Assembly (NCBI GenBank): GCA_002794465.1
Contig: MTSL01000065.1
Coordinates: 9,475 to 41,474, forward strand
Source of the DNA: Paramicrosporidium saccamoebae KSL3
Taxonomy: Eukaryota; Fungi; Cryptomycota
Length of the DNA stretch: 32,000 bases
Direction: 5' to 3'
Shown: one piece after another, positions 23,831 to 31,827 of the stretch
How the letters are laid out: every line of letters starts with the position of its first letter
How positions within the stretch are numbered: the first letter of the stretch is position 1
Program-made: the position numbers and the translations under genes
The notes under the pieces: model-generated
What the model was told of the DNA's origin: nothing
The model's input: the letters and a program-made list of their open reading frames with translations, nothing else
Databases searched by the model: none

Positions 23831-24049
23831 TGAGAAAGAGTATCTCTACCGATCGCAAACTACCAATAAATAGTATTTACTGCAAACCTCACAGTATAAA
23901 TCAGCTTTACTAGCAGCCTTAGAGACTTGAATTATACGTTTCATAAATTTTTCTCTTAAGGGCGCACGTCAGCGTTACCTGGACTGACAGCGTTGACACT
24001 CAATTCCCGCCTATCGTCAACTATTAACCAGCGCCCACGTCTGACACAA

Positions 24050-24511
24050 TGGCCCGGCCAAAGTAGAGCCAACATGTCAGATGTGAGTGTTGGAAAGTCT
24101 AACTCGTGTCTTCATTCGTGAACGATCGCTAAATATCGACTCTTGAATCTCCCCTGCGAAATCTTGGTGTAGACTCCCGGCATTTTACTGTTTAGCTCTT
24201 TGAGAGAGCGGATTTTCTCCCTCATAAGCAGGAGTTTGATTATATCGTTTTCTGATGTTACTCGCCGCACAAAAATTATCTCACGCTGGGATTTTATCAC
24301 GCCAATATCCCCATCGTGATTAAGCAGGGTTTTTTCCCCGGAATTCGCGGAAGTACCAGTGCAGCACCGAGATCTGTACTTATGTCTTCGATGACGGCAT
24401 TTATAGTCTGAGGTAAATTTAGAACAACCCGGGATTCTCAGTCCATGACCCATGCCTGAGGCCCATGAGTTCCAGCTTCCCTGTGGCGTTTTTCGGTTGG
24501 AGAGCGTCCAT
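24050..24511 (-). pseudogene. H-family partner gene of cassette unit A (H-A), frameshifted with stops; boundaries approximate
   Basis: Fragments in different frames (PQAWV, QTINAVIEDISTD, PRIPGK, DGDIGVIKSQREIIFV, NDIIKLLLMREKI) align with the intact H-D. Shares the upstream CCAAATTAGG..GTATAA block. Confidence 0.7.
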
Positions 24512-24666
24512 CCCTTGTACGAGTCTATCGCTGATACTTATACTCGTACCAATTTACCTAATTTGGAGCTTATCGTTCCAAAAGCATCGCAATCATGTCA
24601 AGTATTGACATTAGCTCTGCGGTCTTAGTTACTACACATTATAAGGAAATTACTGATGGCAATGCT

Positions 24667-25630
24667 TTATTGTGTGATTGGTGATGAATCTTTGTACGCC
24701 AACTCAAATTGACTCAACGAGAGTCGGAACAGGATGCGAAAGACTGTGGCAACCTCTAGTACCCTGATGGGAATCAAATCACTGACCGGATTCAATTGAG
24801 GCATCCTATCAACAAAGTCTGCCATCCTCTGGACATCTTCCCCGCGGACCTCAAGGATTTCTAGGACACGTGTCCACTCGTCCTGGCGGTCCGCGTAACC
24901 ATCTTGAAACTCGCGGATCCTCGCTCCAATGTGTAACAATAGTCCCCACCTGACCAGTCGGTCCTTGACTGTCAAGTAGCCGAATCTGAACAGTTTGATC
25001 CGTTGGAGGACTGCACTGATTTCGTGCGATGTCTGTGAGATGTGTATTCTCCAGCGTTCACCCGGAATGCGCAGTTTCGGTTTATAGGCCCACCATAGCA
25101 CATTCGTGTTACTGAAAAACTCGCGTAGATCTGTGCAATTTTCGTATTGCTCCTCTGCAAGTGCACGCCATGAAATGCGCGCTTCATCGGGACAAACTTT
25201 AATTCCAGTCACACGAGCCACCTCTTCTGCAAAGATGCTGGGGATTTCTTTCTTGCAGAACTGGCGATCTGGGAGCTTGCCACACCGGAAGGCTGCCGCC
25301 ACTCCATACCCAGGCACGAAGTACATTATTTTAAACATGCCGTCCTCGACTCTACATCATAAGAGCGCTCTAATCCCAGTACCTCAACTCGGGCTCAAAA
25401 ACATGGTCTTTAAAGAGCTCCACAAGCTTTTGCATGCGTGCTGTAAGAAGGATCTCGTTATCCTCTACACTAGCCCCAAGCAGCATGTTTTCAAGAAGCC
25501 GGAGAACCTTTTCTCTTTCTTGAAGGTCATCAAACCCAAAAGCCTCACATGTTTCGGTGTCAAACTCCTTGCACACCCTCTGTTTCGCTGCGGTCTTCTT
25601 ACCAGCTACGTTTTCAGTGTCTTTCTCCAT
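24667..25630 (-). CDS. Unknown family F1, copy A; join(25630..25383,25351..24667), 310 aa
   Basis: 31-nt phase-2 GTACTG..TGTAG intron. Shares [FI]RCGKLP, RWR, GYLTV.[ED]RL.RWG and LIPI[RK]VLEV.TVFR.LFRLSL..FE.AY with copies B-D. Confidence 0.85.
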
Positions 25631-25759
25631 TGTGTATTACCTACTTCCTCGGTGTTGGTCTGGATGGAATTTTTGGGGACTTTCATCGGATCCTGATACA
25701 CGTTTCATCTTTTTTAAGTAGGATTACTGGAACAGTCCCTCATCGTGACCAATCAATTT

Positions 25760-25960
25760 TCTTTCTGAAAAGTCTAAATGGGAGCTCGTATGGATCAATA
25801 GTAATTTGTCAGCCTAATGCTGGGATCGGATACAAACTCCATCATAGCTTCTCAAACGCTCTGTTCATTGAACAGCGGACGTCCTTTATCTTTTTTATCA
25901 ACGATTGAATCCAGACTCGGGGATCTGACCTTTTGCGAGACTGTGCTTTTCTACCACCAT
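25760..25960 (-). pseudogene. H-family partner fragment of cassette unit B (H-B), truncated; boundaries approximate
   Basis: DPRVWI and KDKGRPLFNEQSV*EAMMEFVSDPSIRL align with H-D QPRVWV..KDPGRPLFRAQSIWSALADLMSNRSIGL (TGG changed to TGA). Not present in the ORF track. Confidence 0.75.
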
Positions 25961-29478: not shown

Positions 29479-29770
29479 GCTTGTCCAATTGGGTTATCGA
29501 TGCTCGCTATCGCGTCCAACAGGCCTACTGCCTAGGAGCCAATCAAGGGACTATGCGAACCAATAGCAAAGCTTGGATACCCATCATAGTAAACTTGAAT
29601 ACTGAAGTGTATGTTGTATTAGATCGAGAGCCACTTGCTATAATGTCATAAAAGCTGTAAAAGTGCATAAACATGAGTAAGTATATTTACGGGCGAGGGA
29701 TTCTAGTCAGGGGCCTTTATTACAGGCCCCATTTTATTTTATTATATACAAGCTATTCGTTCTTTTTCAG

Positions 29771-30346
29771 TCATTGGGGAACCTCTTTAACCATGTGCAA
29801 ATATGGGGAAGCATCCCATTTTAAGAGGTGCCTTCCAAGCTCCTTGCACTCATCAGGAATCGCCGAGAGATCAATGTCTCCTTCGGGTATTATATCAGGA
29901 TCCGGGTGTGCTAAGCCGTTCCGACATCTCCGAAGTTGAGCAGCAATACTGTCAAACCTTGATATGTCCTGAGTCTTAAGAACCTCGAGAAGCAAATTTG
30001 GAATCTTTTGCCTTGCCATGTCCAAGATGTGCAGCTTCTCAGTCACCAAGAGCAGGACATTAATGGCATCGCCCGGTGGCGATGCAGTCTTAGTAACAAT
30101 CACGCCATGCTGAAGGCCTATGGTGCTGATGTCGTCGGCGGGTGAGATGTCTTGGGGTGCTTTATCGGGTATCATGACACATGCCAGCCCAATACTGCGG
30201 TTAGACATGAGATCCGCTAGTGCGCTCCAAATGCTCTGAGCTCGGAATAACGGGCGTCCTGGGTCTTTGCGGCCAAATGACTTTACCCAGACTCGGGGTT
30301 GTCGGCTAGCGCGCGTGCAGTGTTTCCTTCTAGTGAATCTTTGCAT
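29771..30346 (-). CDS. H-family partner gene of cassette unit D (H-D), only intact copy, 191 aa, with HEPN-like R-x4-H motif
   Basis: Uninterrupted ORF homologous to three broken copies; contains LRRCRNGLAHPDPD in a helical-looking C-terminal half. HEPN assignment is by motif only. Confidence 0.65.
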   Translation of the reverse strand: MQRFTRRKHCTRASRQPRVWVKSFGRKDPGRPLFRAQSIWSALADLMSNRSIGLACVMIPDKAPQDISPADDISTIGLQHGVIVTKTASPPGDAINVLLLVTEKLHILDMARQKIPNLLLEVLKTQDISRFDSIAAQLRRCRNGLAHPDPDIIPEGDIDLSAIPDECKELGRHLLKWDASPYLHMVKEVPQ

Positions 30347-30571
30347 CTCGCACGGGGTTGTTTACTGACTGCATCTTGTACTTGCGTTACGTTTCCTAAT
30401 TTGGGCATATGAGATTATATGTCATGGGAGGAACACTTGTATGGATTTTACAGGCTGTAGGATTACAATTTCGCTAGTTATCTAGCATTACTATGAAAAC
30501 TCTTTAAGTACAATGTACAAAACAATATCCACTGCATATTGCCTTTGGTACTACAAATGGCTTAGGACAAC

Positions 30572-31525
30572 TCATGCAGTGATAGTATACGCCATTTCAA
30601 ATTGCTGTAGCGACAGCCGGAAAAGAATTCGGAACACGGTCACTACCTCTAAAACTCGTATGGGAATGAGATCGTCAATGGGATGTAAAAGATGCATCCC
30701 GCTGGTAAACTCTAACATGGTCTGAATGTCCTCCTCGCGGACATCGAGGACAAGAAGAACACGCTTCCATTCATCAGGACGGTTTGAGTAATCATCTTGG
30801 AATTCTTTGATTTCGGATGCAATGTGCATAACAAGCCCCCAGCGTGTAAGCCTCTCCTCCACCGTCAAATACCCCTCTCTATACATCTTTAAACGTTGGA
30901 ACACTGCGCTAATCTCATGCGAGACTTGCGATCGGTGCATCCTCCATCGTTCACCAGGGATGCGTGACTTTGGTTCATAGTCCCAACCAAGAAGGCCGTT
31001 GTTCAGAAAAAACTCCCGTGGCTCTGAATAGTCTTCCACGTGATTATCAACGTTGATATCCCATGTTATACATCCGTCGCCAGGGGAGACTTGAATACCG
31101 GTAATCCGACCAATCTCCTTGGAAAATATGTCCGGCATTTCGTTTTTTCTAAAGGATTCCTCTGGCAATTTTCCACATCTGATAGCTCCCACTCCAAGAT
31201 CGGGAATATAATAAAAGACACTTAGCATCCCATCTTTTACTCTACATTATGTGAGATACGCCCAAAACAAATACCTCGCCACCGGCTCGCTGGAGTAAGC
31301 GTTGAATCTTTGGACAAGTGTTTCCATGCGCGCAAGTAGATTCTCGTTATCTGCATCACTGGTTCCGACAAGCATTTCCTCGAGATGCCTGAGAGCACCT
31401 TTCTCCTCTTTAGAATGGTCAAATTCAAAATCAAACATGAGCCTATTCTCCCTGCGGAATTCACTCTTTACCCTTTCTCGGGCTGAAATCCCAGGATCTG
31501 GTACAATGTCAAAATCTTTCTTCAT
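30572..31525 (-). CDS. Unknown family F1, copy D; join(31525..31275,31241..30572), 306 aa
   Basis: 33-nt phase-2 GTATTT..TGTAG intron at the conserved position; full-length alignment with the paralogs. Confidence 0.85.
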
Positions 31526-31827
31526 TATGTGACACCCGTCTTTGTATCGGATTAGACTGTTTGTAATGGGAGCCTTATCGACCTCTGCAGTGTTTCATAC
31601 TGACCCAACCAACGTGTGGCCATGCACCCACAGCGCCTATTTATTGATAAATGTGCCTTGAACTACTAAGACTAAAGGGGCCAATCATGGAACGCCGATG
31701 ACGTGACATTGGACTTGTTTGCAATATGGCCTAGAAGGCTCTTCCCGGCCCAACGGTCCAAAATTCAGGTATAAATTTTCCCCGGTTCATAGGATCCCTG
31801 TCAGCATGCATCAACCATTACACTGCA

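Follow-up and report, generated by a model that had tools for sequence, protein, structure and literature searches.

An unannotated multigene family interleaved with a second lineage-restricted family in the intranuclear parasite Paramicrosporidium saccamoebae

Paramicrosporidium saccamoebae, an intranuclear parasite of Saccamoeba in the Rozellomycota, has a published assembly of 7.28 Mb, for which 3,750 protein models and a repeat content of 0.53% are given (PMC5701793). We analysed a 32,000-nucleotide (nt) stretch of strain KSL3 (contig MTSL01000065.1, positions 9,475 to 41,474), referred to here as the window, and found that an island within it is one of at least four arrays of a lineage-restricted, unannotated multigene family, F1, interleaved with members of a second lineage-restricted family, H. 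This is an ancient, selected array of two families that evolve by birth and death; in the window it stems from an old tandem duplication that copied an F1-H unit, after which F1 was kept and three of the four H copies decayed. An initial annotation, made from the letters of the window, had described a local amplification of one gene pair. That description does not hold, since the window contains four old subfamilies with saturated synonymous sites and the island is one of several arrays.

Arrays across the genome and the missing annotation

A profile search with eight H sequences identified three further annotated H paralogs, PSACC_00253, PSACC_02333 and PSACC_03646, and the DNA around them in the same genome (loci L013, L014 and L015) carries about nine, seven and one further F1 copies, plus H copies and fragments. 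Taken together, these three other loci, on contigs MTSL01000025.1, MTSL01000153.1 and MTSL01000217.1, add no fewer than 16 F1 copies to those of the window, along with about 10 copies of H, whole or fragmentary, giving a total of at least four arrays and at least 20 F1 copies versus about 13 of H, fragments included. Exon 2 is intact in approximately 17 of 20 F1 copies and H in approximately 6 of 13, and all four annotated H paralogs lie within 1-2 kb of F1 copies.

No F1 gene is called in GenBank, in the window or at L013-L015, and no F1 protein from NCBI was found among 5.8 billion clusters. The single GenBank gene between the two genes that flank the island, a Nic96 nucleoporin gene and a WD40-repeat gene, is PSACC_00765, i.e., the H copy named H-D below. 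The published annotation was produced using MAKER with a RepeatScout library and RepeatMasker (PMC5701793), and we infer that F1 was lost from it through masking of a multi-copy family. The assembly itself is broken by the family, with runs of N inside the L014 array (at about 5440-5450 and 12150) and a 3.3-kb contig, L015, composed solely of F1 and H, therefore the true copy number is probably above our count.

Two unusual gene models were seen at L013. Two annotated genes encoding 109 amino acids (aa) (11291-11620 and 18167-18496, both minus strand) consist of the N-terminal half of H and a distinct tail, with no RNxxAHP motif (see below); they lie inside a duplicated 556-bp segment that is 90% identical, have a mutual ratio of nonsynonymous to synonymous divergence (dN/dS) of 0.27, and may be a functional short form of H. 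PSACC_00253 (10001-10942, plus strand; 295 aa) is apparently a model in which one H is spliced to the initial half of another H lying in tandem with it, and it probably reflects either an annotation artefact or a duplicate in decay.

The island in the window

Searching the window by tblastn with one F1 protein (F1-C) returned four copies, all on the minus strand (31591-30587, 29478-28489, 27065-26403 and 25353-24685), with 52-63% aa identity and E-values of 1e-84 to 1e-112. The equivalent search with H-D returned H-D itself (30346-29774) and remnants at 28269-28028 (E 4e-14), 25952-25780 (E 1e-4) and 24309-24109 (E 2e-3), the last of which is a true remnant according to its reading frames. The features of the island, followed by its two flanking genes, are as follows.

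30572-31525, minus strand: F1-D gene, 306 aa, exons 31525-31275 and 31241-30572 with a 33-nt GT..AG intron at 31274-31242
29771-30346, minus strand: H-D, the only intact H of the window, 191 aa, RNGLAHP motif at residues 142-148
28486-29400, minus strand: F1-C gene, intronless, 304 aa from the homologous Met and 330 aa from an upstream ATG at 29478
27959-28270, minus strand: H-C pseudogene, N-terminal ~90 residues, frameshift near residue 30, no in-frame start and no RNxxAHP region
26385-27339, minus strand: F1-B gene, 307 aa, 31-nt GT..AG intron at 27094-27064
25780-25952, minus strand: H-B pseudogene fragment, residues ~7-64, frameshifted
24667-25630, minus strand: F1-A gene, 310 aa, 31-nt GT..AG intron at 25382-25352
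24109-24400, minus strand: H-A pseudogene, residues ~45-135, frameshifted, stopping just short of the RNxxAHP position
21296-23830, plus strand: flanking Nic96 nucleoporin gene, 844 aa, PF04097
31828-32000, minus strand: 3' part of the flanking WD40-repeat gene, which continues beyond the window end

Much of the structure given in the initial annotation was confirmed. Between Nic96 and the WD40 gene, the minus-strand gene order is F1-D, H-D, F1-C, H-C, F1-B, H-B, F1-A, H-A, as it had stated, and its F1 start spacings of 2125, 2061 and 1709 bp are exact when F1-C starts at 29400, the four starts then being 31525, 29400, 27339 and 25630. Each F1 is indeed followed by an H copy, one intact and three decayed, and reading of the minus strand and of the frames showed the three intron-split F1 genes and three broken H copies that it had described.

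After splicing, the F1 models are intact in all four window copies. The intron of F1-D, F1-B and F1-A sits at the same codon position (after '..ELR/..VAR', phase 2) and F1-C is precisely without it. This exact absence, in F1-C (29180-29150, minus strand) and at least two paralogs (L014 3001-3900 and 5533-6456), shows that intron presence varies inside the family, through precise loss or gene conversion via complementary DNA. All three H remnants, which are frameshifted or truncated, have lost the C-terminal RNxxAHP region.

The GenBank model of PSACC_00765 (P0023, 194 aa, 29771-30408, minus strand) uses an upstream ATG and an intron at its 5' end. However, its homologs P0025 and L006 match the uninterrupted 191-aa open reading frame (ORF) from 30346, through PRVWVKSF..GRPLF, so the spliced 5' end of the annotated model is probably incorrect. 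A 72-nt block that immediately follows the H-D stop codon (29686-29757, minus strand) is 75% identical to the sequence behind the orthologous H gene in L006 (755-820) and L007 (446-511) and may be a conserved 3' untranslated region or terminator.

Scans of the whole window for tRNAs and Rfam families gave no matches, and no third conserved gene was found in a search of the spacers, where conservation is limited to short non-coding stretches. The spacer upstream of F1-B (27411-27958) shares 108 nt at 73% and 40 nt at 87.5% identity with L012 1809-2229, upstream of a metagenome F1, and there is no conserved ORF in these common parts.

Age and selection

Selection was estimated by the pairwise Nei-Gojobori method on 17 F1 copies. 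The median proportions of nonsynonymous (pN) and synonymous (pS) differences were 0.26 and 0.78, with most pairs saturated at synonymous sites, and dN/dS was 0.11-0.21 where dS was finite (e.g., 0.18 for W_C/W_B). Intact H copies gave 0.15-0.20, including 0.18 for two L014 H paralogs and 0.20, at a dS of 0.93, for H-D versus its 70%-identical ortholog on L006. F1 and intact H are kept by purifying selection, and on this evidence both are real genes, as the initial annotation had supposed; H as passively copied flanking DNA, the outcome that it had set against its own reading, is not what the H-D value indicates.

In a neighbour-joining tree each of the four window F1 genes belongs to a different clade. 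F1-A clusters with the metagenome sequences P0013 and P0016 (73%) and F1-D with P0008 and P0012 (67-68%), while F1-C joins one L013 copy and P0001-4, and F1-B joins three L013 copies. The fourfold amplification of F1 is therefore ancient, having taken place before the environmental relatives split off.

Relatives and linkage

Outside NCBI, all relatives of F1 and H come from a small number of metagenomes, mainly JGI 3300042203, 3300042204 and 3300042206, and from individual Logan and ENA entries. The contigs are eukaryotic, carrying the same short intron and, as neighbours, Mog1, choline kinase and ribosomal protein S8. The gene order is F1-H-F1-H on L003 and L004, F1-H on L009 and L010, and H-F1 followed by a convergent choline kinase gene on L002. 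Co-clustering of the two families was thus seen at every examined P. saccamoebae locus and in the environmental relatives, and no H is clearly unlinked, with the short contigs L006 and L007 as a possible exception. Decay of H also extends to the relatives, the first H of L003 having an in-frame stop and a frameshift.

In a chimeric pseudogene on L012 (426-1354, plus strand), a frameshifted 3' end of H (RNRLGHP...) lies between 5' and 3' parts of F1; it looks like the product of two deletions within an F1-H-F1 stretch. No F1 relatives were found in viral contigs. Scans of a collection of metagenome contigs with F1 and then with H gave no confirmed relatives, the homolog-bearing JGI samples evidently being outside that collection.

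Properties of F1

F1 proteins are ~305 aa long and mostly acidic, with a median isoelectric point (pI) of ~5.9. They comprise a variable, helical N-terminal part, a variable alpha/beta middle and a strongly conserved C-terminal helical bundle ending in DLIPIRVLEVxTVFRVLFRLSL. The window copies are 36% identical to one another in exon 1, a value that climbs to 68% over the final 50 residues (36-47% in the N-terminal and middle parts, 65-68% at the C-terminus). The invariant residues in the alignment are mostly Arg, Trp, Pro and Gly, with no recognisable catalytic set. As the initial annotation had noted, F1 has no signal peptide: hydropathy profiles gave no signal peptide or transmembrane segment, the N-termini being charged with no hydrophobic h-region, and the maximum KD19 (1.55-1.69) is located in the charged C-terminal helix.

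The earlier statement that F1 has no recognised domain also stood, as no Pfam family matched any of 26 F1 members or their consensus, and NCBIfam and PADLOC likewise gave nothing above threshold for F1 or H. A HMMER profile of F1 run against 1.84 billion representatives returned 12 proteins, 11 of them metagenome family members and one a low-complexity artefact. The AlphaFold2 model of F1 has a mean predicted local distance difference test (pLDDT) of 73, reaching ~90 in the C-terminal part, and a predicted template modelling score (pTM) of 0.73. It shows three low-confidence N-terminal helices, a beta-beta-alpha-beta-(alpha)-beta unit at 114-196 and a six-helix C-terminal bundle. Foldseek found no significant fold match for this model (best E 0.74 against PDB and 0.32 against BFVD), although ubiquitin-like and FERM matches of low probability (<= 0.2) hint that the modelled middle part could be beta-grasp-like. 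F1 is accordingly undescribed, as had been proposed, with no detectable relatives beyond its own lineage and no fold match.

Three candidate identities were rejected. A sequence-profile search of PDB with F1 gave chance-level matches only; similarity of the F1 C-terminus to the N-terminal helices of NuoE/NDUFV2 (E ~1.2) comes via a shared PIRVxEVxTxF string and is insignificant. F1 as a minimal nucleotidyltransferase is not supported, as there is no GSx(n)DxD in the alignment and no nucleotidyltransferase Pfam match in the 26 members, even at E <= 10. Crinkler/CR-type effectors have an N-terminal ubiquitin-like header with a LxLFLAK-type motif, followed by an enzymatic toxin domain, whereas in F1 the beta-beta-alpha-beta-beta segment is internal (114-196) and a LxLFLAK-type motif is not in the alignment.

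Properties of H and the HEPN question

H proteins are ~190 aa long, and in 16 of 16 the residues D72-I-S74, G77, G81, K104, P116 and R142-N143-x-x-A146-H147-P148 are invariant. The HEPN signature is Rx4-6H in which a polar residue (N/D/H) immediately follows the R, located at the end of helix 3 (PMC3710099), and the RNxxAH of H, a toxin-like motif, has both the Rx4H spacing and the polar residue. Weak matches of H to six HEPN Pfam families (E 0.01-0.2) all fall on the motif region, e.g., HEPN_Apea (E 0.0097-0.11), RiboL-PSP (0.036), AbiU2 (0.034-0.16), Swt1 (0.083-0.21) and Cthe2314 (0.14). A sequence-profile search of PDB with H returned chance-level matches only (MxiA at E 0.35).

In the low-confidence predicted structure of H, DSSP assigns helices to 92-114, 118-124, 128-143 (ending at R142/N143) and 165-175, with a loop and helix after the motif, an arrangement that would be compatible with a HEPN domain. 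A nearly invariant E103 and the invariant K104 lie in the predicted helix 92-114, at a spacing that differs from the Ex3[KR] of HEPN. We place membership of H in the HEPN superfamily a little above an even chance, judging from motif and predicted helices.

Upstream motifs

The motif [AG]TGAAA[CA] occurs upstream of the F1 start in 17 of 20 P. saccamoebae copies, at 55-100 nt and mostly at 68-81, and in six of eight metagenome copies at -77 to -81 (within the 150 nt searched), against an expectation of 0.006 per 46-nt segment. In the window it reads ATGAAAC.

31592-31598, minus strand: ATGAAAC upstream of F1-D, 73 nt before the start
29472-29478, minus strand: ATGAAAC upstream of F1-C
27404-27410, minus strand: ATGAAAC upstream of F1-B
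25702-25708, minus strand: ATGAAAC upstream of F1-A

Upstream of H are instead AATTAGG at about -50 and a TATAAAA-like box at about -33. That these motifs have been conserved while synonymous sites became saturated argues for transcription of both families, and shows F1 and H to be separate transcription units; for F1, it also speaks for genuine genes under common regulation. ATGAAAC opens a short upstream ORF in three window copies (7, 14 and 23 codons), and that of F1-C is in frame with the gene, which produces a spurious extension of 26 codons; the occurrence of GTGAAAC variants favours a DNA or RNA element over a start codon.

Discussion

Given the toxin-like motif, the persistent linkage and the asymmetric decay of the two families (~85% of F1 intact versus about half of H), our preferred interpretation is a conflict-type module in which H would be a HEPN-like ribonuclease (RNase) and F1 its partner or neutraliser. 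We hold it tentatively, at somewhat less than an even chance, and its mechanism is deduced. H would act as a HEPN-type metal-independent RNase with a putative active site at R142-N143-x-x-A-H147, and F1 would be its partner, most likely a binding neutraliser or regulator, so that together they might form a toxin and antidote, or a defence RNase plus its controller. The antidote-like F1 would have been retained and diversified while the toxin-like H was lost repeatedly. Because each gene has its own promoter-proximal motif, any F1-H coupling would be at the protein level rather than through co-transcription. A more specific version, in which a HEPN-type H is checked by a new-fold F1 in a eukaryotic chromosomal toxin-antidote or RNase-immunity system of an early-diverging fungal parasite, and H-less F1 copies are 'orphan antidotes' of an arms race, we regard as unlikely; such an arms race could involve, e.g., a selfish killer or drive element or an anti-virus abortive system.

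Several findings weigh against a functional module. Elsewhere in P. saccamoebae, F1 occurs in runs of three to four copies with spacers of 280-560 bp, too short for H and bearing no trace of it, so there is no 1:1 cognate pairing; the initial annotation was right that an F1-H unit was copied in the window array, but the pair was not the unit of duplication throughout. The upstream motifs differ between the families, and on L006 and L007 the H-D ortholog is followed by a non-F1 ORF. The window F1 and H proteins, spliced and unspliced, are all absent by exact look-up from a collection of 15 billion proteins. For H itself, the HEPN matches are sub-threshold, at 12-15 bits versus Pfam cut-offs of 24-28, and in a control, changing R, N and H to Ala abolished them, so the HEPN evidence amounts to a motif in a helical context. 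The AlphaFold2 model of H is unreliable (pLDDT 41.5, from a three-sequence alignment), and the pI of H is not uniformly basic (6.2-9.3, with H-D at 9.2); an argument from charge, of basic H against acidic F1, was rejected as it fits H-D and fails for H proteins overall. Finally, interaction of F1 with H, and expression of either, are deduced rather than observed, and shared ancestry of tandem or segmental duplicates is enough to account for co-clustering with no functional coupling.

That last point leads to the main rival, namely that F1 and H are unrelated lineage-specific families with independent functions, linked by descent only, with H often dispensable and prone to decay. Two genes that were neighbours in the ancestor would have been duplicated jointly, in tandem or in segments, and would still be adjacent because arrays do not break up easily. 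It would accommodate the common F1-only duplications and the different upstream motifs, the pseudogenised H in three of the four window units and a HEPN signal that stems solely from the motif, and it requires no interaction. However, the linkage has outlasted inversions and species splits over a time in which synonymous sites became saturated, every H was found in or beside an F1 array, and intact H is under purifying selection. We consider this rival rather improbable, if still a serious one. Two other explanations fit less well. Delivery of F1 and/or H into the Saccamoeba nucleus as effectors acting on host RNA or proteins, with the paralogs reflecting an arms race, on the pattern of the large families of host-exposed proteins specific to single microsporidian species, would suit a large lineage-restricted family in tandem arrays of an obligate intranuclear parasite (PMC5701793), as well as the contrast between the variable N-terminal and middle parts of F1 and its conserved C-terminus, and HEPN effectors have been proposed for apicomplexan parasites (PMC3710099). 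Yet a signal peptide and transmembrane segments are absent from both proteins, dN/dS values of 0.1-0.2 are low where elevated ones would be looked for, and paralog subfamilies are conserved between species, which resembles stable function over rapid turnover, leaving this explanation decidedly unlikely. A repeat or mobile-element family, whether transposon or cargo, would account for the masking and the missing annotation by RepeatScout and RepeatMasker (PMC5701793), the multiple copies and their presence on both strands at some loci. It is highly improbable, since terminal inverted repeats, long direct repeats and tandem repeats are all absent (one 23-nt inverted repeat is at chance level), searches for transposase, reverse transcriptase and integrase domains found none, the old and mostly intact copies are subject to strong purifying selection and have a conserved intron and promoter motif, and neither viral contigs nor BFVD gave a match.

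The reference annotation, with its 3,750 genes, lacks an entire family of at least 20 genes. The Paramicrosporidium genome is widely used as a 'less reduced' comparison point for Rozellomycota and Microsporidia, and comparisons of gene content and orphan families built on its annotation are thus incomplete. F1, being strongly constrained and without a homolog outside its lineage or a structural match in PDB or BFVD, stands out as a candidate for a new fold or a new function, and ATGAAAC is a first candidate promoter motif for a little-studied lineage. Should H prove to be an active HEPN RNase controlled by F1, the two would constitute a rare eukaryotic two-gene conflict module.

Comparison with known systems

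Lineage-specific expansions of solo HEPN proteins in eukaryotes include the Swt1-family HEPN in Daphnia (46 copies), KEN in Oikopleura and monocots, and paREP1/8 in Caenorhabditis, and these independent expansions have been read as defence (PMC3710099). H is like them in being small, stand-alone and multi-copy in one lineage, with an RNxxAH motif and birth-and-death evolution that leaves many decayed copies. It differs in that its membership is not established, the matches being sub-threshold and motif-only, in its extra conserved N-terminal half (PRVWV...DDISxIGxQHG), and in being embedded in arrays of a second, more numerous family, an arrangement not described for those expansions. The prokaryotic HEPN-MNT (HepT/MntA) type II/VII toxin-antitoxin systems likewise consist of an adjacent small pair, one with an Rx4H motif and the other a candidate neutraliser, a role for which the acidic F1 would be a counterpart. 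In contrast, F1 has no GSx(n)DxD, and F1 and H are eukaryotic, intron-containing, under separate promoters, not 1:1 and without any sequence relationship to HEPN-MNT.

Among fungi, the wtf genes of Schizosaccharomyces pombe produce poison and antidote from one gene via alternative starts, encode membrane proteins and are associated with long terminal repeats (LTRs). Both wtf and F1/H are multi-copy, diverged families in a fungal genome that comprise intact copies, antidote-only-like copies and pseudogenes, with the poison predicted to be lost and the antidote kept. However, F1 and H are two separate soluble proteins and have no LTRs.

Microsporidia carry large species-specific families, such as InterB in Encephalitozoon and NemLGF in Nematocida. 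F1 has the features of a lineage-specific multigene family, i.e., restriction to one clade, many paralogs and tandem arrays, without the typical secretion signal. Like InterB and NemLGF, it is a clade-restricted, large tandem family of reduced-genome obligate intracellular parasites within the Rozellomycota/Microsporidia lineage. It shares no sequence similarity with either, and unlike them F1 lacks a signal peptide, is under strong purifying selection, keeps its subfamilies conserved between species and is paired with H.

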